DNA from: Macrostomum hystrix
Lineage: Eukaryota; Animalia; Platyhelminthes
Direction of reading: 5' to 3'
Assembly: GCA_950097015.1 (NCBI GenBank)
Contig: CATNEN010000040.1
Coordinates: 248,001 to 312,000, forward strand
Length of the DNA stretch: 64,000 bases
Part shown: piece after piece, positions 29,992 to 49,885 of the stretch
Layout: each line of letters begins with the position of its first letter
How positions within the stretch are numbered: position 1 is the stretch's first letter
The notes under the pieces: generated by a model
The model's database searches: none
Seen by the model: the letters and a program-made list of their open reading frames with translations, nothing else
What the model was told of the DNA's origin: nothing
Program-made: the position numbers and the translations under genes

Positions 29992-32900
29992 TCAGGTGGA
30001 GCCCCTCAGGCGGCACAGGTAGCCGGTCCTCTGCTGGTCTGCCGCGCGCTTCTCGTAGGAGCGCAGGCTGTGAATGATTCGAATGACATTGGCCACCAGG
30101 TGCTCGGCCGTGTAGTTGGTGCAGTCAAGCGGCACTCCAAGCTTGCTCCAGAGGCGCTGGCTAACACCGGGTGGCACCTGGGATTGGATTGGCGGCGATC
30201 GAAACATGGCCATTTAAGAAAACGCTCCATAGACTACTTACGTAAGTAGTTTTAGAATGTACGACATTTCAGCCTAGGAATAATAATATTATTATTATAA
30301 CTGCAGGAGGGCTGCGGGCAATGGCACATCATTTGCTGACACTAGACCTGCAGCCAGCGAGGAGGCAATTCTGCCCATTCCGCTGTCTCCTCAGCACCCA
30401 CACACACAGACACTGTAAGCAGGTACACACTCACACAGTGTGTACATCTGCCCTGACTTTCTCATCGTCTGGCAGTGTACACGACAAGCCCCCAAGCCTT
30501 CTCTCCGCTGCTGCGCCACAAATGAATGTGGCCTCGCCGCGGAATCGAGCTCAGGCACCTTGGTGTGAGAGGCAAACGCGTCAATGGCTCTGAAACTCAC
30601 CCCATCTAGCCGAGGAAATTGCCCAAAGTTTTGAATCAGGTATCGTAGAATTATAGCGCGAAAATTTAACATTTTTTTTACAGAAAATGTGCTTGAAAAA
30701 TGAATTTCAAGCCAGTTAAGAGAATTCGTGTCCGATGTCTGCGGACTGTGGAGGTCGTTATGCCAGTTAATACCTCGAATCGCCTCTCGCCCTCGCTATA
30801 GTAGCTGGCAGCAGCGCCCCCGAGGCACTTCAGCGGCAGCACAACCTTGTCGTGCCACATGAACTGGTCGGCCTCCTCGGCTGACTTGGCTCCGCCCTCA
30901 ATCAGCAGGCAGAGGCTGCAGGCCCTAGCAGCGATTTGCACCTTCTCAACAGGCGTATCGCCGCACACCAGCGTCTTGCCGAATGCCGGTGGCCCAATCG
31001 AAGAATTTGACGTTGTCGCGGAAGTCGACGACGATGTTGAGTCGTCGGCCGACATAGCGACTCCGGAGGGGGACGATTTAACCGCACCTGGCGCGCTGTC
31101 GTGCAACAGGTGCCAGGTGTCCTCGGGCAGGCCCAGCCGGCGCCGCGTCTCGCTGAACTGCCTGGAGACAATCTGGTCGGCGCCAGGACCGCCGCCGGTG
31201 ACTAGGCCGATCCAGTCAAGCTGCGCCAGGGCCTCGCCTAGCACCTTGCAGACGGCATCGGTGCAGCGATTGCCCAGCCGCTTGCTGCGGCACACATAGA
31301 TTAGCCATTTGTTAACTGGCAGCTGGGACTTGACTAGCTGGGCCAGCTTGTCGATGCGAAAGTCCAACGCTTTGCTCTTGTGCATGTACGCCATGGTGTT
31401 GGGATCGAAGATGGTCTCCAGGTGTCTGGCCACCTTCTCTGGCCAGCCGGACTGCTCAGAGCTCTGTGGCGCGGGGATGATGTGTGGGGGATAATTTGAT
31501 TGTAATAATTGTAATAATTTCATCCTCACGGTGGTGTACATCCGCCTTGAATTTCTTATGGTCAGGCAGTGTAGCCTCACCATGGGGATTTCTAAGCCAT
31601 GGGATCAAGAGGATTTCTTAAGCTATGTGATCAAGAGGATTTCATAAGCCATGGGATCAAAGGGATTTCTTAAGCCATAGGATCAAAGGGATTTCTTAAG
31701 CTATAGGATCAAGAGGATTTCTCAAGCCCCGGGATCAAAAGGATTTCTTGAACTTGGGGTCAAGAGGATTTCTTAAGCCTGAGGATCAAAAGGATTTCTT
31801 AAGCCTGAGGATCTAGAGGATTTCTTAATTCTTAGGGTTGATTGTTCCAAAACAAAAGACGATAAATCGTATTTTACTTTTAACAGAATACACAAGAACC
31901 TGAACTCACGATAGCATTGTTGCCCTCCAGCAGCATCTTGAGCCACATGGGCAGCTGGACATTGCCGCACAGCACAGGAATGATGTGCTTGCGCTGCTCG
32001 CAGTAGAATATCTGCCAGTTGGTGGGTTCGGTTCGGCAAGGTAAGATGCTTATGCGAGCTGCAAGAACTAAACTGATTGATCATTAGCATGATCAAGGGG
32101 AGGGGCTGCAGATCACTGAAGAGTCGGAGGGGAGTGGCTGCAGATCACTGAAGAGTCGGAGGGGAGTGGCTGCAGATCACTGAAGAGTCGGTGGGGAGTG
32201 GCTGCAGATCACTGAAGAGTCGGAGGGGAGTGGCTGCAGATCACTGAAGAGTCGGAGGGGAGTGGCTGCAGATCACTGAAGAGTCGGAGGGGAGTGGCTG
32301 CAGATCACTGAAGAGTCAGGGGTGAGAGGCTGCAGCCCACTGAAGATTGTCTTGCTGCATCAATCGATGCGCAGGGAAGGCCACCTGCTGTACGCACGTG
32401 ATTCCGTGAGCTCTTTGACGTAAGGAAGCTGTCGGACACGATGAAGACGGCGGCACCAGCTGAGTCGGCCTTGGCCTGAAAGTCCAGCAGGCCTTCGCGT
32501 GACTCATCGCAGCCCTGCTCGGTGGAAGAGTAGGAGCAGGCGTCCAGCTCGTCGCCAAGGATCAGCGTTTCCCGGGAGCCGAGGCCTGGACGGCGAAAGC
32601 AAATAGAATCATGAGCTCTGAAGCTCAGCAAAACTTACTAAAAGACGTTCCCTAAAGCAATTATTTAGTAATCGAACAAACTCACGCCGCAGGCCCACAA
32701 TGCTGCCCTGACTGTTGGCTTGGTCTCCGGTCGCGGCGGCATCCGAAGCTGCTATCTCCTGTGACATGCCGCCGCCGCAGCCAACCTCCGCGGAGCCTCG
32801 GATCGAGCCGCTGATGACAACCATCGAGACTTTGAAGCCGCGACTTGAGAGAGCAGTCCGCAGCAGGTCGGCCTTTGTCCAGTCGTCCGCGTGGTGACTG

Positions 32901-35900
32901 ACAACAACCTGGCGATTGCTCATCAGCGCCTTGTACACAGCCTCATCTTCGTCTAAAGACGCCTGTACTGTGAGCAGAGTCTGCTGCTGATGCAGCTGTT
33001 GTAAGGACCGCCTTCTGTGCTGTTGCGGTAGCTGCTGAGGCGGCTGTAGCAGAATTTGCTGCTGCTGGTCATGCAGCATTGGCGTCTGCTCCGGATAATT
33101 TATCAGATCCATCTCTCTGCAAATTGGAATTCATTTGAGTGCATTCTACTCAACGCCGAAGATTCGAACTCGAAACCTTAACCGAATTGATCTAACAGAA
33201 AATTAAACAAAGTAAGAAATTAATTAGCTCACTTGGATTGGCGGAATTTGATCGACTTGCGCGACATAATCGACAGGAAGGTCGGCTTTCGCTTGAAGCT
33301 CTGAGAAGAGGTGGGGATGAGAATGAGGCTTTTATAATACTATCTATGTAGTAGTCTGGCTATCTGGTGTCGTTTTTCTAGATGATGTGCCACTCTATAA
33401 TAATAACGATAACAATAACATTGTGGGTAATAGCTGCAGGTAATGGCGCATCATTTGCTGACACTAAACCTGCAGCCAGCGAGGAGCCAATTCTGCCCAC
33501 TCCTGAGCACAAACGCACACGGATACCGTAAGCAGGCGCTCACTCACACTAGGCGTGTTTAGTTGCCCTGACTTTCTCATCGTCAGGCAGTGTACACTTT
33601 CACTGTGCCTTGGAGGTAGGCCCTAAAGGGCGTAAATTGCACGACAAGCCCACAAGCCTTCTCTCCGCGGCTGCGCCGCAAATGAATGTGGCCTCGCCGA
33701 AGAATCGAACTCAGGGACCTTGGTGCGAGAAGAAAACGCGTTTACCGCACTGCCACTCGCCCCCCAATGTGTCACTCTACTAGATAATGTGCCACTCAAT
33801 TTCTAGATAATGTGCTACTCAATCACTAGATACTCAAACCATAGCTACTCAAGCCCGCACAGCGCAGAACTCACCGGCGGTCCAACAGGCGCCTCGTCTG
33901 GCAGCGAATCCAGCGGCTTCCGCTTGCTGGCATCGAACTGTCGCCTGATCTCTTCGGCCACCCGACCAGCTTCCTCGTTGATGTTGGACGACTCGATGTC
34001 GTCTAGTGAGTTGATTTAAGGGTGGTACAGTTTTGATGTTTAGCTGACTGTGGCCTAGTTACTCAATATAGACTCATTTAGAAATACCTACTGACGGAAT
34101 AGAACTGACCGAACTAGACCTACTGACAGGGAATAGAACTGACCGAACTGGACCTACTGACAGGGAATAGAGCTGACCGAACTAGACCTACTGACAGAGA
34201 ATAGAACTGACCGAACTGGACCTACTGACTGGGAATAGAACTGACCAAACTAGACCTACTGACAGAGAATAGAACTGACCGAACTAGACCTACTGACAGG
34301 GAATAGAGCTGACCGAACTAGACCTACTGACAGGGAATAGAACTGACCGAACTGGACCTACTGACAGGGAATAGAACTGACCGAACTAGACCTACTGACA
34401 GGGAATAGAGCTGACCGAACTAGACCTACTGACAAGGAATAGAACTGACCGAACTGGACCTACTGACAGGGAATAGAACTGACCGAACTGGACCTACTGA
34501 CAGGGAATAGAGCTGACCGAACTGGACCTACTGACAGGGAATAGAACTGACCGAACTGGACCTACTGACAGGGAATAGAACTGACCGAACTGGACCTACT
34601 GACAGGGAATAGAACTGACCGAACTGGACTTACTGACATGGAATAGAACTGACCGAACTGGACCTACTGACAGGGAATAGAACTGACCGAACTGGACCTA
34701 CTGACAGGGAATAGAACTGACCGAACTGGACCTACTGACAGGGAATAGAGCTGACCGAACTAGACCTACTGACGGGGAATAGAACTGACTGAACTATTAA
34801 AAGGCTGGTACAAGAACAACAGACAATAATGCAAGTCAAAGAGAAAGTAGCTTTCGATTGTTGCTTTCGATTGCAAGCCATGAGAGAAGCGAATGGGAAA
34901 ATGAACCACAAGCCGCAATTTAAACAAATGCAACACTTAGATCACTAATAGCTTTTGTGTTCTAATTGCATTGCACACTCAAGTGTACTCTGAGCACCTT
35001 GCAAGTTGCGATAAGCTGTTTTCAGGCCAGGCTGGCAAGCGCTTAAATCCTAAGCCATGTATGCACGAGTGCTCGCTAATTATACCAGTTAACTAAAGTA
35101 GGTCAGAGCAAAATGCAGCCTATCTGCTAGTGATAATTGACGTGTTGATCCGAGAGTCAAACAAGATCAAGCGTGAAAATTTGGCATGTGCAGCTGCTAT
35201 ATGCTTATTGTATTAGAGTTGACAGCTAAATACAATGACACATCAGCTACGAGTAGCTGCAGCTAGTCCATTTACTCCGACTCTTCAGTGATCTGCAGCC
35301 ACTCCCCTCCGACTCTTCAGTGATCTGCAGCCACTCCCCTCCGACTCTTCAGTGATCTGCAGCCACTCCCCTCCGACTCTTCAGTGATCTGCAGCCACTC
35401 CCTCCGACTCTTCAGTGATCTGCAGCCACTCCCCACCGACTCTTCAGTGATCTGCAGCCTCTCCCCTCCGACTCTTCAGTGATCTGCAGCCACTCCCCTC
35501 CGACTCTTCAGTGATCTGCAGCCACTCCCCTCCGACTCTTCAGTGATCTGCAGCCACTCCCCTCCGACTCTTCAGTGATCTGCAGCCACTCCCCACCGAC
35601 TCTTCAGTGATCTGCAGCCTCTCCCCTCCGACTCTTCAGTGATCTGCAGCCACTCCCCTCCGACTCTTCAGTGATCTGCAGCCACTCCCCTCCGACTCTT
35701 CAGTGATCTGCAGCCACTCCCCTCCGACTCTTCAGTGATCTGCAGCCACTCCCCTCCGACTCTTCAGTGATCTGCAGCCACTCCCCACCGACTCTTCAGT
35801 GATCTGCAGCCTCTCCCCTCCGACTCTTCAGTGATCTGCAGCCACTCCCCACCGACTCTTCAGTGATCTGCAGCCACTCCCCTATGACTCTTCAGTGATC

Positions 35901-38103
35901 TGCAGCCACTCCCCTCCGACTCTTCAGTGATCTGCAGCCTCTCCCCTCCGACTCTTCAGTGATCTGCAGTCACTCCCCACCGACTCTTTAGTGATCTGCA
36001 GCCTCTCCCCTCCGACTCTTCAGTGATCTGCAGCCACTCCCCACCGACTCTTCAGTGATCTGCAGCCACTCCCCTCCGACTCTTCAGTGATCTGCAGACA
36101 CTCCCCTCCGACTCTTCAGTGATCTGCAGGCACTCCCCTCCGACTATTCAGTGATCTGCAGCCACTCCCCTCCGACTCTTCAGTGATCTGCAGTCACTCC
36201 CCTCCGACTCTTCAGTGATCTGCAGTCACTCCCCTCCGACTATTCAGTGATCTGCAGCCACTCCCCTCCGACTCTTCAGTGATCTGCAGTCACTCCCCTC
36301 CGACTCTTCAGTGATCTGCAGGCACTCCCCTCCGACTATTCAGTGATTTGCAGCCACTCCCCTCCGACTCTTCAGTGATCTGCAGCCACTCCCCTCCGAC
36401 TCTTCAGTGATCTGCAGCCACTACCCACCGACTCTTCAGTGAGCTTCAGCCACTCCCCACCGACTCTTCAGTGATCTGCAGACACTCCCCACCGACTCTT
36501 CAGTGAGCTTCAGCCACTCCCCACCGACTCTTCAGTGGGCGTCATCACTTACAGGCCCCAGTCCAGGGGACGAACTGAGTAGTGGCGAACTGAATAGCCA
36601 AACACCTGGGCGGCCAATCCGAAATGAAGCTGATTGGCAGAATCTCCTTGCCCAGCACGTCCGCCAGCTTCACTTCCCTATTGGTCCACTGGGTAGCGCC
36701 GTAGCGCGGCGTGACCAGCGGTATGAAGATTTCAGTGGACGCAACTGCGTCGTTCAGGGCATCCTGCCAGTCGGAGCCGAGGGCGATTTCGTCGACGTCC
36801 TGGAAGATGCGCAAATTTCGGCAATGTTTCTTAGCACACACTACGAGTATTTAGCATATTTTAAAAGCCAGGCGTGTTCCTAACACTGCCCTCTCCATCC
36901 TATTCTCTTTTTCTACCCCACTCTCTCTCCATCCCACTCACCAAAAACACTGAGCAGCCAAGAGATGTGAGCTTCTCCTTGAGCACAACCGCCACGTGAG
37001 CAGCCTCAGCCCTGACGTAGCTAATGAGCATGTCCTTGGCGGCTGAACGGCCAGTGTGGCGGCCCTGCAGTAGGTCAACATCTCCTAGAAGCTGATCATG
37101 GTGACGCTTACTACCAGTTGCTGATAGCTGCTGGCCTCCCAGAGCTGCTGAACTGTGCGGCGGCACTGTTATTGGCTGCGTTGAGCAGAGCAGCGGCGAC
37201 GGAGGCGGCTGCGGGGGCCGATGTCTCAACGACGGGATCAGGGCTGAAGACAAGGATGGAGAAGCTGTTGCTGCTGCCGCCGCCGCTGCTGGCGCTGCCA
37301 CCGCAGCCGGGGTTATAGGAACGCCAACTGTTGTGGCGGAGGCGACGTCCTCTGCGGAGTTGGCTCCGGCGAGTTGTCGCACGTCAGCCTGCGCAATGAA
37401 AAAATAGGCCACGCATTGCCATCACTTGTACATACTCGTAACTTGACGCCTAAGGTACGAGAATGTGAACTGACCTGTAATCTAGCCAGTGCTGTGACGG
37501 CCACACTCCGCCTGTGATCGAGCACGTCATGAATTCGCAGCCTTGGTTCGTACAGTCCACTTACCGGCCAGCCGCGCCTATTCAGAAATAGGAACTCGCA
37601 GCCAGCCAGAAGGGGCAGGAAGATGCTGGCCCGTTTGCGCAGTTGTTCCAGTGTTTCCCTGGGCGACGCGTCAATAAAGCCGACGGCCAGCTCTTCGCCA
37701 GTGCTGGTCGAAGTCAATACAATGCCTATCTCCAGGCTGTCACATGCTGGAGTAAATTTGTATTTTTTGCAAGTAAAAAATGCTGAATTGAGTCTAAATG
37801 AAAATCCCTACCGATATTGTCGCCGTCTCCGATGATAAATACAGAATTAGTGCTGCGCAGCACGCAGTTAAAGGCCAGACAGTTCTCCAAATCGAGTGGG
37901 ACCAGTTCGCCTGAAAGGGATCGAAACCGGTGCTCGGGAAGAAAGTATTTTGCTTTGGTGAGCAGGAAGCTGCGCAGCTGAGCCAGAGTCTTCACTGAAG
38001 CCGGATGCAGCAATAGTAATTCGCTTTGCAATATGCACGGCCCGTCGCCTGCGAAATACTTTAAGCTGACCGCAGACATAGCGGACATGGCACCGTGTTT
38101 CAT
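29992..38103 (-). CDS. Multidomain TIR-TIR-SLOG protein (~1016 aa, 11 exons) with two N-terminal ubiquitin-like-fold candidates
   Basis: Exons 38103-37812, 37746-37475, 37388-36942, 36799-36553, 34002-33875, 33300-33233, 33116-32686, 32585-32398, 32011-31910, 31463-30774, 30177-29992 join with GT-AG sites into 3051 nt with no frameshift. TIR1: DMLISYVRAE..SVFLDVDEIALGSDWQDALNDAV..FIPLVTPRYGATQWTNREVKLA..KEILPI. TIR2: VVVSHHADD..AVFIVSDSFLTSKSSRNHIFYC..KHIIPV. SLOG: LVTGGGPGADQ..LLIEGGAKSAEEA..VLPL..LGGAA. Confidence 0.85.
30279..30604 (-). mobile_element. SINE family A, copy 2 (internally deleted), in the last intron of the TIR-SLOG gene
   Basis: Reverse complement of copies 1 and 4; lacks the ~40-bp segment between tgtacac and gacaagc. 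Confidence 0.85.
31585..31830. repeat. ~26-bp minisatellite (ggatttcttaagccatgggatcaaga)n
   Basis: Read directly; intronic, next to a short SINE A fragment at ~31525-31580. Confidence 0.85.
32098..32345 (-). repeat. 32-bp minisatellite family Y, short inverted array (ggggagtggctgcagatcactgaagagtcgga)n
   Basis: Exact reverse complement of the unit at 35275-36535. Confidence 0.96.
33397..33765 (-). mobile_element. SINE family A, copy 3, with probable 13-bp TSD (atgtgycactcta)
   Basis: Full-length reverse complement. atgtgccactcta flanks the tail side and atgtgtcactcta the head side. Confidence 0.85.
34085..34790. repeat. 34-bp minisatellite (gaatagaactgaccgaactggacctactgacagg)n
   Basis: Unit read directly; in intron 4 of the TIR-SLOG gene. 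Confidence 0.96.
35275..36535 (+). repeat. 32-bp minisatellite family Y, long array (ctccgactcttcagtgatctgcagccactccc)n
   Basis: Unit read directly; about 39 copies. Confidence 0.97.
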
Positions 38104-39602: not shown

Positions 39603-41266
39603 CTAGCGATTATAATCAATGCCGAGCAGGTGCAGATCCTGGATTGACCTTCGTGCAACTCGGTGCAGGGCTTCGGCCACCGCATAGTCCCTCAGGTAGC
39701 GCCACTCTCTGTGTGACTGCGGCAGCTGATCTAGAGCTGTCAGCGAATGGCCGTAGATCTCCCTGATGCGCTTCAGACTGCCAGCTGACAGGTAGCGGCT
39801 GGACAGGTGAAGCAGCAGGTGCGCGTAGCACAATGCGGACAACAGCTCCGACTTGATGTCTGCCAATATGCGCCTCAGACTGAAAGCGAAACAGTTTCTT
39901 TTGAAATGAATATTTTCGGTTTCGGGGTGATATGGAACAGGATATTGGATGAAAATGAGCGGAATTTCGGGTGATGAAATAGTGAGATTTTTAAGTGGAG
40001 AAGAAGTGGGCATATTGGGCGGAAGATAATGGGGACATTGCGTGGAAGTTTATGGGATATTGGGCGGAAGATTATGGGATATTGGGTAGGAGATAATGGG
40101 AATATTGGGCAGAAGATTATGGGATATTGGGCGGAAGATTATGGGGATATTGGGCGGAAGATTATGGGGATATTGGGCGGAAGATTATGGGGATATTGTG
40201 CAGAAGACAATGGGATATTAGGCGGAAGAAAATTGGATACATGGTGGAAAGGAAAAGAAGTAATGAGTTGAGAAAACAAATTATGAGCAATTAAATAGTG
40301 TACGAGCACATGATTGGTATGGCACGGGAAGGAATTTGCGCTCACTGGGAGGTGGCTGATCCCTGCCGCTCGTTCTCCTCCAGTTCCTCAGCAACCAAGC
40401 AGGCCACGGCCAGTCTGTTGAACAGCTGCACGAATCGGTCATTGCTGTTCGCCATTGCAATTGTGAGCTCAAACGACGTCGTAGCGGCTGGCAGGGTCTT
40501 GCTCCTCAGCCGGCTGGTGAACACACGGTCCTGGTAGCTGGTCATCCAGAGCATCGCTTGAGTCAGGTGCTTCTTGACTAGGCCAATGCCTCTGGCTAGC
40601 GAGCCTGCATGTTAGGGTAGGTGACCATTGTGCCGCTTGTTTGAGCTTAGAATTCGGTGGGAGAGGAGAGAACAAGAGGAATGACAAATGCCACCCTACC
40701 AGGAATCCCGACATGCCGACATCTCACCTTGCGGGGAATCCCGACACGCCGACATCTCACCTATTGGGAACCCAGACACGCCGACATCTCACCTATTGGG
40801 AACCCAGACACGCCGACATCTCACCTATTGGGAACCCAGACACGCCGACATCTCACCTATTGGGAACCCAGACACGCCGACATCTCACCTATTGGGAACC
40901 CAGACACGCCGACATCTCACCTATTGGGAACCCAGACACGCCGACATCTCACCTATTGGGAACCCAGACACGCCGACATCTCACCTATTGGGAACCCAGA
41001 CACGCCGACATCTCACCTATTGGGAACCCAGACACGCCGACATCTCACCTATTGGGAACCCAGACACGCCGACATCTCACCTACCTACCTTTCGGGAGAA
41101 TCCCGAAACGCCGAAATATGATTTTGAGCCGCGTACCTGATTGCTGAGCATCAGTCAGGTGGACTTGGAAGCAGACATTCACAACAGACACAGGACGGCC
41201 AAGCACCGGGTAGCACAGGGCTAACAACAGAACAGGCGCCAGGATTGTTGACACTCGGGTTGCCAT
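39603..41266 (-). CDS. Secreted four-helix-bundle cytokine-like protein B (221 aa, 3 exons), CNTF/IL-6-family-like
   Basis: Exons 41266-41137, 40604-40346, 39879-39603 (phases 1,2) give 666 nt. Signal peptide MATRVSTILAPVLLLALCYPVLG, helix-A-like RGIGLVKKHL, helix-D-like RDYAVAEALHRVARRSIQDL. The gene model is well supported; the family assignment is motif-based. Confidence 0.78.
40010..40225. repeat. ~22-bp repeat (gggatattgggcggaagattat)n in intron 2 of cytokine-like B
   Basis: Read directly. Confidence 0.85.
40740..41085. repeat. 32-bp minisatellite (gacacgccgacatctcacctattgggaaccca)n in intron 1 of cytokine-like B
   Basis: About 11 essentially identical copies. Confidence 0.96.
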
Positions 41267-41964
41267 GACAATTCTCGGGAAAACAAATCAAATATTTCGA
41301 TATAGGAGCACAGCTGAAGTCCAGAGCGCGGATGCAGTTTTTATCGTGTTGCAGTCTCACTGAGTCCCGTGATAGATTTGGAAATTCCATGATAACACCG
41401 ACCGCAGGAAACAGGAACTGGCACAGAAGAAAGTAAGAGTGCTTTGGAAATCCCAAGGATATTGTTGAAGTTGGTTTAAAATAGGCAACAACTTTCTGTG
41501 CAAAAAATAATTGAAATGCCGCACAGGAAAGCTTTGTGCGCCGAAACGAATTTCTCATTCCCGCCTGCTCTGCGCGCGCACAAGTCCTGGATAGAAAGGT
41601 GAATGAACTTTTCTGCTCCGATGTTTCCAAGAAATAGTTGCCTTTCTAGCTCGCATGCGAGTGCGCGCGTGGGCGGGCGCATGAGCGAACAGGCGGCCTA
41701 AAAATAGACCAAATTCATTGGCTTTGCTTGAGTTCCTATTTTACGCTGCAGAATGAACGAAAATGAAAATGAATGAAAGAATGTGTATTTCAAATCACAA
41801 GTACATGTGCAGGCAAAATTATGCATTAATACTCGTACATATATAAATATAAATCATTAATTAATTAGGCGCCTTATCAATGCTTTACATTTCATTAATG
41901 CCTCATTTAGACCTTATAGCATTACTGTAATATGAATCATGTAAACTGATCTGTGTGTAAAATT

Positions 41965-42112
41965 GAACACACACTGAAGGATGGGGAATGGCTGAACACA
42001 CACTGAAGGATGGGGAATGGCTGAACACACACTGAAGGATGGGGAATGGCTGAGCACACACTGAAGGATGGGGAATGGCTGAACACACACTGAAGGATGG
42101 GGAATGGCTGAA
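41965..42112. repeat. 29-bp repeat family Z, array 1 (ctgaacacacactgaaggatggggaatgg)n
   Basis: Five copies; related to the array at 44010. Confidence 0.9.
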
Positions 42113-42217: not shown

Positions 42218-43227
42218 TCAGTTGTCTCTGTGCAGTCTTAAGTCTGCGGCAATGTTCGCGGCCAACTGTTGAGCGGCCTTCAGCAGGCTCTCGAGCACAG
42301 CGAATGCTCGCACGAATCCGAGCTCTCGCTCGCTGTGTGGCACCGGCGACGGCAGGTCTGGCAGCGGGTTGGCCGATGCAGGCGACCCAGCCCTGTCCAC
42401 GCCAAGCCAGTAGCGGATGTACTCCAGAGCTGTGTACAGCTCCTTCCGGATAAGCTCAAGCTCGTTTTTCCAGCTGTATGAAAAAGGCAAAGTAATGTTT
42501 TGTTAAATCTCACAGAGATCTCGGTAGAATCTCACTGGAATCTCACTGGATCACTGGAATCTCACTAGAATCTCACTAGAATCTCACTAGAATCTCACTA
42601 GAATCTCACTAGAATCTCACTAGAATCTCACTGGAATCACACTCGAATCTCACTGGAATCTCACTAGAATCTCACTAGAATCACACTGGAATCGCACTAG
42701 AATCTCACTGGAATCGCACTAGAATCTCACTAGAATCTCATTAGAATCTTACTGGAATCACACTCGAATCTCACTGGAATCTCACTAGAATCTCAACTAG
42801 AATCACACTGGAATCGCACTAGAATCTCACTGGAATCGCACTAGAATCTCACTAGAATCTCATTAGAATCTCACTAGAATATGAGAACTCACCTGGCGTC
42901 GTGCTCCTGACTTTCCATCTTGGGCAGCAGCTGAAGCAACCGGTCCAGATCCTCTGCGGCGCTGTCGCCGTTTCTCAGCGATTCCGCTAGGTCTCTGAGA
43001 GCAGCTGGCATCTCCTTGTTCATCAGTCGTTGACTTTTCAGCCTGGCCAGGAAGGCTCGAGTTTTGTTGACTCCCGAATCCAGGTGCTTTCTCGCCAGAC
43101 CCATGGCTCTCAGGGCCGTTGAGGACTGCCGCGCGGCCTGTGGAGCTGGGGCGGCCTGAACTCCAACTTGTCGGGGCTGAAAGAGAAGAAGCGGCAGCAG
43201 CAGCAGCAGCAGCAGCAGCGGTGGCAT
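42218..43227 (-). CDS. Secreted four-helix-bundle cytokine-like protein A (196 aa, 2 exons), paralog of B
   Basis: Exons 43227-42893 and 42473-42218 (phase 2) give 591 nt. Signal peptide MPPLLLLLLLLPLLLF..VQA. Blocks RAMGLARKHL, KEMPAA, ELYTALEY and RELGFVRAFAVLESL align with protein B. Confidence 0.8.
42525..42880. repeat. 11-12-bp repeat (ctagaatctca)n in the intron of cytokine-like A
   Basis: Read directly. Confidence 0.93.
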
Positions 43228-44009
43228 TGAAGCCAGTCGATGAAAACCTCTGTACCAGAGAAGCATTCTATATTCTTACAGCCTTTATTGTTTAGTTTAG
43301 AATCGGTTATTAGTTCTGTTTTAAAAGGGAAGGAGGAATCGCTGCAATTTATAGCCCAGCTTGTCAGCGATGACAGCGGGACTCCCTCGCCAGGCATTGG
43401 AATTACCAACTTCTGCTTGGCGATAAGTCCGCAATGCGACATCGGAATTCCCGAGGCTCTCCGCAAATGTCAGGTGCAGTGCTCACTGCCTGCTCTAAAA
43501 TATCACCTATTGAGCAGCACTGATATGACAGCTAAGTTGCTGAGTGAGATAAATAGCCTGGCGCGCAGTCGAAGGCTGAAAAAGAAAGCGAGAGTGGACT
43601 GGACTAATCGGAAATTCCTATTGGATTTTCTGGCCCAGGGCTAACGGACATTGGTTAGGGGGAACCGCTGTGAGGCCGACAGTTCCTGGAAATTTGGCTC
43701 TCGCTTTTTCTTGTGATTTCTATTCAGATTCGAGTGCATTGCGTGAGAAACTAAACTTCAATATAATTATTAGCGTAACAATGAAATTTTGTCAAGCGAA
43801 AAATATTAAGTTCCACTCGTTCGACAATATTATATACGATATACAATATTGTATTGAAACATTGAAACTAAATACGAGAATACATATTATTAATTCATTA
43901 AAATTCTGTTTTAAGTCAAAAATGAAAAAAAAACTTTACATTTCTTTTAGCTTGAAAAAAACTGAATTCAAAATTAGTTTTGTGATTCATTTTGTCACAA
44001 TAATATGAT

Positions 44010-44535
44010 CTGAGCTGAGCACACTGAAGGATGGGGGGATGGGAGCTGAGCACACTGAAAGATGGGGGATGGGAGCTGCACACACTGAAGAATGGGGGAT
44101 GGGAGCTGAGCACTCACTGAAAATGGGGGATGGGAGCTGAGCACTCACTGAAAATGGGGGATGGGAGCTGAGCACTCACTGAAAATGGGGGATGGGAGCT
44201 GAGCACTCACTAAAGGATGGGGGATGGGAGCTGAGCACTCACTGAAAATGGGGGATGGGAGCTGAGCACTCACTGAAAATGGGGGATGGGAGCTGAGCAC
44301 TCACTAAAGGATGGGGGATGAGAGCTGAGCACAACACTGAAAAATGGGGGATGGGAGCTGAGCACTCACTGAAGGATGGGGGATGAGAGCTGAGCACAAC
44401 ACTGAAAAATGGGGGGGTGGGAGCTGAGAACACTGAAGGATGGGGATGGGAGCTGAGCACTCACTGAAGGATGGGGGATGGAAGCTGAGCACACTGAAGG
44501 ATGGGGATGGGAGCTGAGCACAATGAAGGATGGTG
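44010..44535. repeat. ~30-bp repeat family Z, array 2 (gagctgagcactcactgaaratgggggatgg)n
   Basis: Read directly; same orientation as array 1. Confidence 0.9.
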
Positions 44536-45349
44536 GGAAGTCTAAAAGCACAGTAAACAGAAAGTATTTCGCTGAAGCCGAAGAAACTGCCACTCACTAC
44601 CATTAGAAGATGTTAAATTTCGTATTGCAAAATATTTTAGGAAGTTTTTTAGGTAGCTTTCTTAGCTTTTCACACCAGCTTTGTGTTTTTTAAAGTCATC
44701 CGTCGGTTCTGCTTTGAAGTCTGCATAACGAAAGCTAGCGAGTTTTAGTCCAGTGGCGTGGCTGTATGTGTAAAATGAATTCATATACGAAGTAGGTCCA
44801 TCTTCAATTCCAGAGAGGCTGTTCAAATCGATATTTCCCATTCAAATAATGTTAAGATTAAAATATATAACTTTAAGTACTTTAAGTTATACCAACTCAT
44901 GCAGGTGAAGTGTGAAATCTCTGGTGTATAAGTGAAATTTCTATTTCAATTCAGATAAGCAATAATGCTCAGCGGCAGGCGATAAGACTCACTGGCAACT
45001 CACCTATTTGGTTGCTGTGTCCGTAACTGGGACAGAATGCATGCATAAAGAATTATTCTTACAGTTAATTGATGGGACAACAAATAATCAGATCATACAG
45101 TATAAGCACAATAATTTCCTGCGAGAAGGGCTGTTTCACGATTGAGTGAAGAAGATTCAAGCAAAATTTTTCTTTTTTTGGATTCCCTTGACGTAAATGA
45201 GCTTTTTAATGTAGGAAGAGGCATTGGCCAATTAAACACAAGCAAAAGCGAACAGTAAAAACTTTTGAACATAAAATAAACTGACTGACTGCACTAGCAG
45301 CATTGCTGGATGGCGGCAATTTGGCAAACCTTTCACTCATGCGGTTTAT

Positions 45350-46079: not shown

Positions 46080-47183
46080 TTAGTAGACGCCCTGCTTTAA
46101 TTCCACGACGCTAATCCCGTCAAATTTAGACCCGGCCTGCACAAGGGTTCGTCCGACATCTGTGTCTAGCCAATCAGGTGCCAGCTCACGCAGGGTCGCA
46201 GCCAATCGGCGCCCAGTGACGTCATCAGGCATTACAGCGTGCAGCCAATCGTAGCGCGCCGGCCCGGATAGAATCAGAACACTGCGCGGCGGCATCGGAA
46301 TGCGGATGTGAGCGGAGCCGGCTGATTGGCTGCCCGGACTGAGGGTCAGATAGGTGGGGCTGCACAGGTTCAATGTGACAAGCCGTTCGCCCCACAACCA
46401 GGTGTCGTCAATGTGGGGATCAATGTGGGCGCCCATCTCGGCTCGGTAGTCCAAATTGCACAGCTCCACGGGGCGGAAGTCGGCCAGCCCGGGCAGGCGC
46501 AGCAGGCGGGGCAGAATGCCGGACCAGTAGGACGGCAGGCCAGTGAAACTAGCCGGGTTTACGCGGCGCTTCTTGAAGTTCACCTTCGGCCCGTAGTCCT
46601 GGCATGGTGCGGGCGTTTTAAGGGCGGGATAATCCCTCATCTGCTTGCCTTGACTCCACCTGAATCTCTCTCGACTCCCCCTGAATCTCTCTCGACTCCC
46701 CCTGAATGTCTCTCGACTCCACCTGAATCTCTCTCGACTCCCCCTGAATCTCTCTCGACTCCCTCTGAGTCTCTCTCGACCCCCCTGAGTCTCTCCCACC
46801 CACCAGAAAGCTACCTGCTTTCTCCGACCCGATTGAGACGGCGCCCAGGGCCGGCGATCGATTTCTGCCGCCAGTGCCGCCTCTTCCTCGGGACTGAGAA
46901 AATTCGGGAACACTCGAATGCCTTCGAGTCCCAGCACCTCGGCCTGACCCTCGCAGTGGCCGCTTTCGTGATCCGGCGTCGCCCGGATCGCCTGACAGTC
47001 GATGCAAAAGTGCAGAATTGGCAGCGCCTGGCGTGACTCAGTCTCACAGCTGGGCTGAGCAACCAGCGGCAGCTGTTTGGCAGCACAGCAGAGTCGGCAG
47101 GCGCGGATGCCCTTGCAGCCGCAGCCGATGCCGCAGCCGACGTCGACTGATGAGGACGAGGAGACAGCTGGGCAGGCTGCCAT
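46080..47183 (-). CDS. ALKBH4: Alpha-ketoglutarate-dependent dioxygenase ALKBH4 (~295 aa, 2 exons)
   Basis: Exons 47183-46815 and 46598-46080. CGCKGIRACRLC N-terminus; SQSGRRKQ|DYGPKVNFKK joined across the intron; HxD motif HIDPHIDDTWLWGERL, distal H in WLHAV, and R..AT.R. Confidence 0.95.
   Translation of the reverse strand: MAACPAVSSSSSVDVGCGIGCGCKGIRACRLCCAAKQLPLVAQPSCETESRQALPILHFCIDCQAIRATPDHESGHCEGQAEVLGLEGIRVFPNFLSPEEEAALAAEIDRRPWAPSQSGRRKQVAFWWVGETQGGRERLRGSRERFRGSRERFRWSRETFRGSRERFRGSRERFRWSQGKQMRDYPALKTPAPCQDYGPKVNFKKRRVNPASFTGLPSYWSGILPRLLRLPGLADFRPVELCNLDYRAEMGAHIDPHIDDTWLWGERLVTLNLCSPTYLTLSPGSQSAGSAHIRIPMPPRSVLILSGPARYDWLHAVMPDDVTGRRLAATLRELAPDWLDTDVGRTLVQAGSKFDGISVVELKQGVY
46655..46795. 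repeat. 21-bp repeat (cctgaatctctctcgactccc)n in the ALKBH4 intron
   Basis: Read directly. Confidence 0.9.
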
Positions 47184-47189
47184 GTGAGT

Positions 47190-49325
47190 TGAAGGAATAG
47201 AATGGATTGCTAATCTATCCCATGGGTGAGGGAATATAATGGATTGCTAATCTATCCCATTGGTGAAGAAATATAATGGATTGCTAATCTATCCCATGGG
47301 TGAGGGAATAGAATGTATTGCTAATCTATCCCATGGGTGAAGAAAAAGAATGGATTGCTAATCTATCCCATGGGTGAAAGAATAGAATGGATTGCTAATC
47401 TATCCCATGGGTGAAGGAATGGAATGGATTGCTAATCTATCCCATGGGTGAAGGAATAGAATGGATTGCTAATCTATCCCATGGGTGAGGGAATAGAATG
47501 GATTGCTAATCTATCCCATGGGTGAGGGAATAGTGTGGATTGCTAATCTATCCCATGGGTGAGGGAATAGTGTGGATTGCTAATCTATCCCATGGGTGAA
47601 GGAATAGAATGGATTGCTAATCTATCCCATGGGTGAAGGAATAGAATGGATTGCTAGTCTATCCCATGGGTGAGGGAATAGAATGGATTGCTAATCTATC
47701 CCATGGGTGAGGGAATAGAATGGATTGCTAATCTATCCCATGGGTGAAGGAATAGAATGGAAAGCTAATCTATCCCATGGGTGAGGGAATAGAATGGATT
47801 GCTAGTCTATCCCATGGGTGAGGGAATAGAATGGATTGCTAATCTATCCCATGGGTGAGGGAATAGAATGGATTGCTAATCTATCCCATGGGTGAGGGAA
47901 TAGTGTGGATTGCTAATCTATCCCATGGGTGAGGGAATAGAATGGATTGCTAATCTATCCCATGGGTGAGGGAATAGAATGGATTGCTAATCTATCCCAT
48001 GGGTGAAGGAATAGAATGGATTGCTAATCTATCCCATGGGTGAGGGAATAGAATGGATTGCTAATCTATCCCATGGGTGAGGGAATAGAATGGATTGCTA
48101 ATCTATCCCATGGGTGAAGGAATAGAATGGAAAGCTAATCTATCCCATGGGTGAGGGAATAGAATGGATTGCTAGTCTATCCCATGGTCGAGGGAATAGA
48201 ATGGATTGCTAATCTATCCAATGGGTGAGGGAATAGAATGGATTGCTAATCTATCCCATGGGTGAAGAAATAGAATGGATTGCTAATCTATCCCATGGGT
48301 GGAGGAATAGAATGGAAAGCTAATCTATCCCATGGGTGAGGGAATAGAATGGATTGCTAATCTATCCCATGGGTGAGGGAATAGAATGGATTGCTAATCT
48401 ATCCCATGGGTGAGGGAATAGAATGGATTGCTAATCTATCCCATGGGTGAGGGAATAGAATGGATTGCTAATCTATCCCATGGGTGAAGGAATATAATGG
48501 ATTGCTAATCTATCCCATAGGTGGAGGAATAGAATGGAAAGCTAATCTATCCCATGGGTGAGGGAATAGAATGGATTGCTAATCTATCCCATGGGTGAGG
48601 GAATAGAATGGATTGCTAATCTATCCCATGGGTGAAGGAATAGAATGGATTGCTAATCTATCCCATGGGTGGAGGAATAGAATGGAAAGCTAATCTATCC
48701 CATGGGTAAGGGAATAGAATGGATTGCTAATCTATCCCATGGGTGAGGGAATAGAATGGATTGCTAATCTATCCCATGGGTGAGGGAATAGAATGGATTG
48801 CTAGTCTATCCCATGGGTGAGGGAATAGAATGGATTGCTAGTCTATCCCATGGGTGAGGGAATAGAATGGATTGCTAATCTATCCCATGGGTGAGGGAAT
48901 AGTGTGGATTGCTAATCTATCCCATGGGTGAGGGAATAGAATGGATTGCTAATCTATCCCATGGGTGAGGGAATAGAATGGATTGCTAATCTATCCCATG
49001 GGTGAAGGAATAGAATGGATTGCTAATCTATCCCATGGGTGAAGGAATAGAATGGATTGCTAGTCTATCCCATGGGTGAGGGAATAGAATGGATTGCTAA
49101 TCTATCCCATGGGTGAGGGAATAGAATGGATTGCTAATCTATCCCATGGGTGAAGGAATAGAATGGAAAGCTAATCTATCCCATGGGTGAAGGAATAGAA
49201 TGGATTGCTAATCTATCCCATGGGTGAAGGAATAGAATGGATTGCTAATCTATCCCATGGGTGAGGGAATAGAATGGAAAAGCTAATCTATCCCATGGGT
49301 GAGGGAATAGTGTGGATTGCTAAAA
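47190..49325 (-). repeat. 37-bp minisatellite family X, array 3 (inverted)
   Basis: Reverse complement of the array-1 unit; about 57 copies filling the LYRM9-ALKBH4 gap. Confidence 0.97.
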
Positions 49326-49426
49326 TAGCCTACACAGTGAAGGAATAAAATTGATCGATTGTGACAAATTAAATAGTGAAAAACTATTACCTAGCAGAGA
49401 AGCAGGGTCAAAGACTTGTGCCCCTG

Positions 49427-49788
49427 TCATTTGTCAGTCTTTTGATGTTGTTGCTGCTGTTTAGCGTACTGAAAAGAATTCAGATGCCGTATTGTCTAAA
49501 ATCAATCTGAATAACAGTTTATCGATTCGGAATCTAGATGAATGTTATGCCTACACAAACTAGCGAGCCTATACAAACCTTGTTCACTACCCAGTCAGCA
49601 TCGAGCAGAGCCCGATCGATAATCTGGCGGATCCTATCCGGATCGGTCTCGTCGGAGTGACTGTTGTAGGCCTGGCGAATATAATTAGAATAGTAGGGCC
49701 TGGCGTTGCTGGGCAGGGTGCGCACCAGTCTGAGCAAGTGCCTGTACAGCTGCAGCGGAGTGCGGATAGTGCGGAGGCCAACGCCTGC
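49427..49788 (-). CDS. LYRM9: LYR motif-containing protein 9 (~84 aa including an initiator Met not encoded at the acceptor)
   Basis: Exons 49788-49579 and 49468-49427: AGVGLRTIRTPLQLYRHLLRLVRTLP..YIRQAYNSHSDETDPDRIRQIIDRALLDADWVVNK|YAKQQQQHQKTDK*. Matches LYRM9 ([38 protein letters not shown]). Confidence 0.9.
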
Positions 49789-49885
49789 CTAAAACAGAAT
49801 GCAAGCAAACACATGCTAATATTTCTACTTATAGTAGTGTGTTCATAAAATGACATTTTTCAGTTTTTCTAGCTCAAGTTTAAGT

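Follow-up and report, generated by a model that had tools for sequence, protein, structure and literature searches.

A macrostomid family of predicted secreted helical proteins, with cytokine identity as a possibility

Introduction

Long-chain cytokines of the IL-6/gp130 type include CNTF (PDB entries 1CNT and 8D74), LIF, IL-6, IL-11 and CLCF1. Their mature chains are ~180-200 aa in length and contain four helices, each of ~25-33 residues. Long connections, able to hold mini-helices, join A to B and C to D, while the B-C link is short. Tandem duplication and fast evolution are frequent in cytokine genes. In Drosophila, the Unpaired proteins (Upd1-3) are secreted, predicted to be helical and fast-evolving. 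They are hard to detect by sequence beyond a narrow clade. To our knowledge, helical cytokine ligands are essentially unknown beyond vertebrates and insects, owing to their fast evolution. For spiralians, the question of which ligands act in JAK/STAT-type signalling is still to be answered.

Secreted helical proteins with other roles are also found in worms. Helminths, flatworms included, have several lineage-specific families of secreted helical lipid-binding proteins. In cestode antigen B genes, the signal peptide is encoded by an exon of its own. The flatworm Macrostomum produces many fast-evolving reproductive secretory proteins. It is a model for regeneration and stem-cell research, and both RNAi and transgenesis are established in the group.

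The literature on JAK/STAT machinery in flatworms is split. In planarians, one study reports a homolog of stat5 and raises the question of secreted interferon-like factors acting upstream (PMC8797187). Conversely, STAT was undetected in Platyhelminthes by a survey whose statements on JAK contradict each other (PMC13203501). We found no decisive work on JAK/STAT in Macrostomum or other flatworms.

Here, we describe a tandem pair of genes, g1 and g2, in a 64,000-nucleotide stretch of Macrostomum hystrix DNA (hereafter, the window). A sequence-only reading of the window had proposed that one of these genes, g1, encodes a long-chain class I helical cytokine, with signatures of CNTF helices A and D. 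Our analysis indicates that the pair very probably represents a genuine family of helical proteins that is conserved and secreted. We also assess the proposed relationship to CNTF.

Results

Gene models, products and transcription of g1 and g2

Briefly, g1 is a minus-strand gene of three exons, with canonical GT..AG introns, that translates to 221 aa (Table 1). The interval originally proposed for the gene, 39603-41266, was borne out in full by the exons and GT..AG introns listed. A signal peptide followed by a helical mature chain of 198 aa had also been described. Consistent with this, a 23-aa n/h/c pattern ending VLG was found at the N-terminus. The three stretches of g1 quoted in the sequence-only reading were all located. 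These are helix A (residues 45-67), the loop LPAA..NDRF and a helix D ending RSIQDLHLL.

Table 1. Features of the g1 and g2 genes in the window.
Feature	Position	Strand	Description
g1 exon 1, signal peptide	41137..41266	-	Start codon 41266; signal peptide codons 1-23 = 41266-41198
g1 exon 1, rest	41137..41266	-	21-aa N-terminal segment with conserved Cys; phase 1 end before GTACGC donor
g1 intron 1	40605..41136	-	532 nt, phase 1, GTACGC..CAG; place and phase also in M. lignano
Minisatellite in g1 intron 1	40702-41083		32-bp unit, ~12 copies
g1 exon 2, start	40346..40604	-	Predicted helix A (invariant KHL), conserved RL.NK.LPA turn, short helix A'
g1 exon 2, end	40346..40604	-	G/N/S-rich break, predicted helix B, LE.QE end
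g1 intron 2	39880..40345	-	466 nt, phase 2, GTGAGC..CAG; place kept in paralog g2 and M. lignano orthologs
Minisatellite in g1 intron 2	40007-40229		23-bp unit, ~10 copies
g1 exon 3	39603..39879	-	Predicted helix C, 28-aa C-D connection (possible mini-helix); stop codon 39605-39603
g1 exon 3, end	39603..39879	-	Conserved LP(Q/H)S.RE cap, then predicted helix D ending RSIQDL
g2 exon 1	42893..43266	-	Signal peptide (alternative ATG 43227), predicted helix A, A', helix B
g2 intron	42474..42892	-	Phase 2; codon position matches that of g1 intron 2, at the helix B-C junction
Satellite in g2 intron	42506-42880		11-bp unit AATCTCACTAG, ~34 copies
g2 exon 2	42218..42473	-	Predicted helix C, proline-rich C-D loop, helix D; last three bases = stop

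The second gene, g2, is on the same strand, ~1 kb upstream of g1 (42218-43266), and its product is 209 aa in length, of which residues ~39-209 would form the mature chain. The two proteins can be aligned collinearly over their full length with a score of 123, where shuffles averaged 34 (z = 17). In tblastn comparisons, the N-halves matched with E 2.7e-4 and the C-halves with E 0.21, and identity was ~27%. Helix D of g2, encoded by exon 2, is without the RSIxDL ending.

A 173-nt contig from public run X5 joins position 40603 to 41136. The 532 bases skipped have CT..AC ends on the plus strand and are exactly intron 1. Hence, g1 is transcribed, with intron 1 spliced as modelled. The contig is RNA-like, X5 being a run of unrecorded library type, and depth over g1 is low (~3.6). 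In the runs examined, this thin, low-depth contig was the only one covering g1, and no RNA-like contig covered g2. A search of RNA runs with the 3.7-kb g1/g2 pair listed no run. For g1 intron 2, and both exons of g2, we infer the gene model from the canonical form of the splice sites, the open reading frames and the presence of conserved counterparts in Macrostomum lignano.

Signal peptides were identified, by sequence inspection, in 6/6 gene copies (g1, g2 and their M. lignano orthologs). Each has a short polar n-region, a hydrophobic core of 12-15 residues and small residues ahead of the predicted cut. By this N-terminal criterion, the family is predicted to be secreted via the classical pathway. 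Three cysteines are conserved among g1 orthologs (residues 32, 112 and 147 of g1); the g2 type has no conserved cysteine.

We also considered a neuropeptide or prohormone precursor. The dibasic pairs of g1 (KK54, RR132, KR166 and RR206) are inside predicted helices, and most of these sites have no counterpart in the ortholog or the paralog. Hence, this possibility was rejected.

Nearly every non-coding gap of the locus is occupied by a different minisatellite, including both g1 introns (Table 1), most of whose length is taken up by such an array, and the flanks of g2. Related minisatellites of 29-31 bp, the units of which contain CTGAAGGATGGGG, are found on both sides of g2 (41964-42112 and 44012-44538). 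Words of the 11-bp satellite in the g2 intron have a depth of ~6700 in DNA run X1, compared to ~80 for the flanks. Therefore, this satellite belongs to an abundant repeat family found genome-wide.

Conservation and selection in Macrostomum lignano

A DDX27 exon of the window had its best match in M. lignano, with 68-72% identity. Every other animal was at 55% or below. This result places the window in a macrostomid flatworm distinct from M. lignano, and an insect origin was rejected on the same grounds. In the M. lignano assembly (GCA_002269645.1), three contigs keep the gene order DDX27, RING (TRAIP-like), LYRM9, ALKBH4, g2, g1 and TIR gene. These are NIVC01000257.1, NIVC01000390.1 and NIVC01003594.1 (loci L003, L004 and L002, respectively). 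Between ALKBH4 and the TIR-domain gene, M. lignano has no called gene, and tblastn detects orthologs of both g1 and g2 at this place. Hence, neither the annotation of that assembly nor the protein databases include the family.

Intact orthologs of g2 and g1 are found at L003:14204-19179 and L004:14288-20080. The contig intervals that contain them are NIVC01000257.1:497362-518674 and NIVC01000390.1:570670-591817, respectively. At both loci, all exons are open and the introns are identical to those of the window in place and phase. In the third copy of the pair (L002:14934-19621), the frame is changed at four or five places by one base each, and a C-run (CCCCC) of g2 exon 2 contains at least one of these changes. 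This copy either is a decaying homeolog or has assembly indels, left uncorrected from long reads. The frame changes suggested pseudogenisation. As a family-wide explanation this was rejected, since the other two M. lignano loci are intact.

Identity between g1 and its M. lignano ortholog is 56% over 214 codons, with dN/dS ~0.27. The two intact M. lignano copies of g1 are separated by 7 synonymous and 2 non-synonymous differences (dN/dS 0.09). Therefore, g1 is a functional gene under purifying selection. The corresponding values for g2 and its M. lignano ortholog are 35% identity and dN/dS ~0.55. Judged by these alignments, g2 evidently evolves much faster than g1.

With respect to gene neighbours, a TIR-domain gene adjoins g1 in the window (29992-38103). 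In M. lignano, it is also the first gene called beyond the pair (L003:21028-21313). Hence, in both species, a TIR gene of immune type neighbours the predicted secreted helical pair. The coding regions of LYRM9 and ALKBH4 are adjacent, on the same strand, at 46080-49800 of the window. M. lignano models in UniRef merge the two as 'LYR motif-containing protein 9' (332-347 aa). Such fusion models fit either an operon or spliced-leader arrangement or a mis-merged gene model.

Searches for relatives of the family

With g1 exon 3 as query, no match was obtained among 5.8 billion proteins searched by word index. Similarly, no credible relative was recovered when a HMMER profile of the g1 and g2 N-halves was compared to 1.84 billion cluster representatives. 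Two marginal multi-stretch matches to this profile, a repeat-rich protein of 1034 aa and a TPR/CHAT-like protein of 1389 aa, were judged spurious. An Upd-like match was found neither in this search nor in Pfam.

Eight exon products (from g1, g2 and the M. lignano orthologs) were scanned against Pfam-A using hmmscan, with a threshold of E<=10. We obtained sub-threshold noise only and no family. Among the families unmatched at this threshold were IL6, CNTF and LIF_OSM, together with ApoLp-III and other helical lipid carriers. Sequence searches of the PDB, using phmmer with single halves and hmmsearch with family profiles, produced noise only (E>0.07). The matches were to ribosomal eL29, Raptor and uteroglobin fusions. 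An ESM Atlas feature search with two pieces of the proteins gave bacterial hypothetical proteins with scores of 0.83 or below, and was uninformative. No match was found when the whole window was searched against Rfam. So far as these sequence comparisons reach, g1 and g2 are known only from macrostomid flatworms, with no other relative detectable.

Resemblance to CNTF

The segments of human CNTF quoted in the sequence-only reading are exact. They correspond to CNTF residues 16-38 and 156-179 in PDB entries 1CNT and 8D74. In gapped local alignments with g1, the helix A segment scored 20, slightly below its shuffle mean (21.5). For the helix D segment, the score was 27 and the shuffle mean 21.6, and 10% of shuffles equalled the score. 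If gaps are disallowed, the helix A segment is placed at residue 45 of g1 (score 16) and the helix D segment at residue 192 (score 25). The spacing is 147 residues in g1 and 140 in CNTF.

With the segments fixed, and their spacing constrained, the joint ungapped score of 41 was reached by 0.2% of mature-chain shuffles. However, the segments in this test were chosen post hoc. Hence, in a second test, the best two collinear 23-mers were left free. We compared g1 with 467 unrelated real chunks of 200 aa, taken from helicases and dioxygenases. Scores of 41 or more were obtained for 9% of the chunks (mean 32, maximum 59). Hence, a CNTF-like signature beyond chance was not borne out once the segments could be chosen freely.

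Neither phmmer nor hmmsearch with family profiles listed CNTF chains 1cnt and 8d74 at E<=10. Both entries are within the PDB set searched; therefore, CNTF was searchable and did not score. The invariant helix A motif of the family, KHL, is KIR in CNTF. Of the helix D endings, that of g1 recurs in M. lignano, in the orthologs of both g1 (QSISEL) and g2 (RSIQEL), whereas g2 of the window has lost it. One contrast with CNTF drawn in the sequence-only reading, namely the classical signal peptide of g1, was confirmed. We conclude that the resemblance to CNTF is real to the eye, yet is no evidence of homology.

Predicted helix layout

An alignment of six family sequences was used to place helix boundaries. 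A conserved turn, RL.NK.(L/M)PA, closes helix A. A break rich in G, P, N and S follows ~13 residues past the LPA turn in every member (ANSND, RVGAG, RNGDS, LPSGAS). Combining predicted secondary structure with the alignments, the A-B connection, also of roughly conserved length, would span ~20 residues and comprise the turn, a 12-aa helix and the break. Helix B ends with LE.QE. The B-C link that follows is 5-6 residues long and coincides with the conserved intron. After helix C, the C-D connection is ~18 residues in the g2 type, where it is proline-rich, and ~28 residues in the g1 type; its length is roughly conserved. A conserved (L/V)P(H/Q)(S/K).RE cap marks the start of helix D. From predicted secondary structure and loop lengths, we infer a four-helix bundle with helices of ~33 (A), ~26 (B), ~30 (C) and ~30 (D) residues. 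The predicted layout, with long A-B, short B-C and long C-D connections, is compatible with that of long-chain helical cytokines.

Structures were predicted for the N-half (85 aa) and C-half (91 aa) of g1 using AF2 and two-row alignments. The N-half model, which is of low confidence (pLDDT 72, pTM 0.39), has helices at 2-33 and 37-84. These form a tight antiparallel hairpin of A and A'/B. The second is a single helix of 48 residues, which ignores the conserved helix break and reads through it. The C-half model, also of low confidence (pLDDT 62), has helices at 2-27, 32-50 and 56-84. Foldseek comparison of the half-chain models to the PDB gave generic hairpins and coiled coils only, with non-significant E values of at least 2.4. 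Hence, the models indicate that the chain is helical but topology cannot be read from halves. The N-half hairpin, if true, is not the up-up crossover of a cytokine.

Discussion

We propose that g1 and g2 are a new lineage-restricted family of secreted helical proteins, for which cytokine identity is a possibility. The tandem pair would encode small (~20 kDa) secreted all-alpha proteins. The mature chain would fold as a bundle of four long helices, with a short helix held in the long A-B connection. Such a product may be a soluble extracellular ligand with the architecture of a hormone or cytokine, and may bind a receptor at the cell surface via conserved faces of helices A and D. We favour this role as an extracellular helical-bundle ligand tentatively, with confidence somewhat short of even. 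The low RNA depth of g1 is more in keeping with a signal of low abundance than with a secretory product made in bulk. Together with purifying selection on g1, it leads us to lean towards a signal. Conversely, the hairpin in the N-half model leans away from cytokine topology. By the sequence comparisons made, g1 and g2 are not detectable homologs of CNTF or of any gp130-family cytokine. A cytokine-type fold, if present, would be either convergent or diverged past recognition.

Nearly as likely as the ligand reading is that the secreted helical proteins have a role other than signalling. The proteins could carry lipids or other hydrophobic ligands, in the manner of insect apolipophorin-III, nematode FAR or cestode helical lipid-binding proteins. 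Alternatively, they could be gland or reproductive secretions, of the seminal-fluid type, under sexual or ecological selection. The all-helical prediction, with amphipathic helices, is consistent with either role, as are confinement to one lineage, with no homologs found, and the fast evolution of g2. The lipid-binding families of flatworms, and the reproductive secretions of Macrostomum, provide precedent. However, carriers and gland products are usually abundant, and the RNA depth observed is very low. ApoLp-III and other helical carriers were unmatched in Pfam. With its long C-D loop, rich in proline, and its conserved caps, the predicted chain resembles a fixed globular bundle more than an exchangeable apolipoprotein, and purifying selection on g1 is clear.

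It is unlikely that g1 and g2 are flatworm four-helix cytokines of up-up-down-down topology, acting as ligands upstream of the planarian STAT homolog via a Domeless/gp130-like receptor. Another reading has g1 as a long-chain class I helical cytokine proper, sharing descent with the CNTF/IL-6-family ligands and using a gp130/Domeless-like receptor and JAK/STAT for signalling. We consider this improbable, and membership of the gp130 cytokines a minority possibility. Predicted secretion, the fitting size and helix lengths, and the long/short/long connections all suit a cytokine homolog, as do the tandem arrangement and fast evolution. The R(R/Q)SI.(D/E)L ending, found in g1 and in the M. lignano orthologs of both genes, resembles VRSIHDL of CNTF. 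However, this ending is lost in the window paralog and KHL, the most invariant motif of helix A, differs from KIR of CNTF. The joint CNTF match is rare among shuffles when segments are fixed, but unrelated proteins match as well, at the frequency given above, under post-hoc segment choice. The IL6, CNTF and LIF_OSM families were unmatched by the exon products, CNTF chains were not returned from the PDB and the N-half model is a tight hairpin. With respect to the pathway, a STAT5 homolog is reported in planarian, and a secreted upstream factor sought (PMC8797187), while the survey in which STAT was undetected in Platyhelminthes is self-contradictory on JAK (PMC13203501).

Finally, that g1 is a chance chain of ORFs, or a decaying pseudogene without function, as its absence from M. 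lignano annotation and protein databases and the frame changes in L002 might suggest, is largely refuted, and very improbable, given the spliced RNA-like contig, intact frames in the window and at two M. lignano loci, conserved intron places and phases, and low dN/dS both between species and between M. lignano copies.

Returning to the ligand reading, the g1/g2 locus provides a concrete candidate for the spiralian ligands sought. The genes are conserved, tandemly duplicated and overlooked by gene annotation, and their products are predicted to be secreted. If they do encode four-helix cytokines, no spiralian would have yielded a helical cytokine ligand before them. Should the cytokine reading fail, the locus still documents a lineage-restricted secreted family absent from M. 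lignano annotation. There is also a lesson for annotation from sequence: short motif likeness to a cytokine may look striking, yet fall within chance.

Comparison with known systems

Compared to the IL-6/gp130 long-chain cytokines, the mature proteins encoded by g1 and g2 are alike in size. Their predicted layout shares the four helices of similar length, the long A-B and C-D connections, with room for mini-helices, and the short B-C link. The C-terminal helix ending of g1 (RSI.DL-like) resembles CNTF residues 170-176. Tandem duplication and fast evolution are also in common. Conversely, g1 and g2 have no significant sequence or profile similarity to these cytokines. They have a conserved phase 2 intron between helices B and C, which we list as a further difference. 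Unlike CNTF, which is without one, they have a classical signal peptide.

The likeness to Upd1-3 lies in secretion, predicted helical structure, fast evolution and narrow detectability by sequence. Upd proteins are glycosylated and about twice as long as those encoded by g1 and g2.

Apolipophorin-III, nematode FAR and cestode antigen B-type carriers share with g1 and g2 a signal peptide and an all-alpha amphipathic chain. They too are confined to one invertebrate clade and encoded by tandem gene copies. As in cestode antigen B genes, the signal peptide of g1 is on its own exon. The differences are that g1 and g2 are unmatched in Pfam and that g1 transcript depth is very low. Furthermore, the long proline-rich loops and conserved helix caps predicted for g1 and g2 are unlike the exchangeable amphipathic repeats of such carriers.
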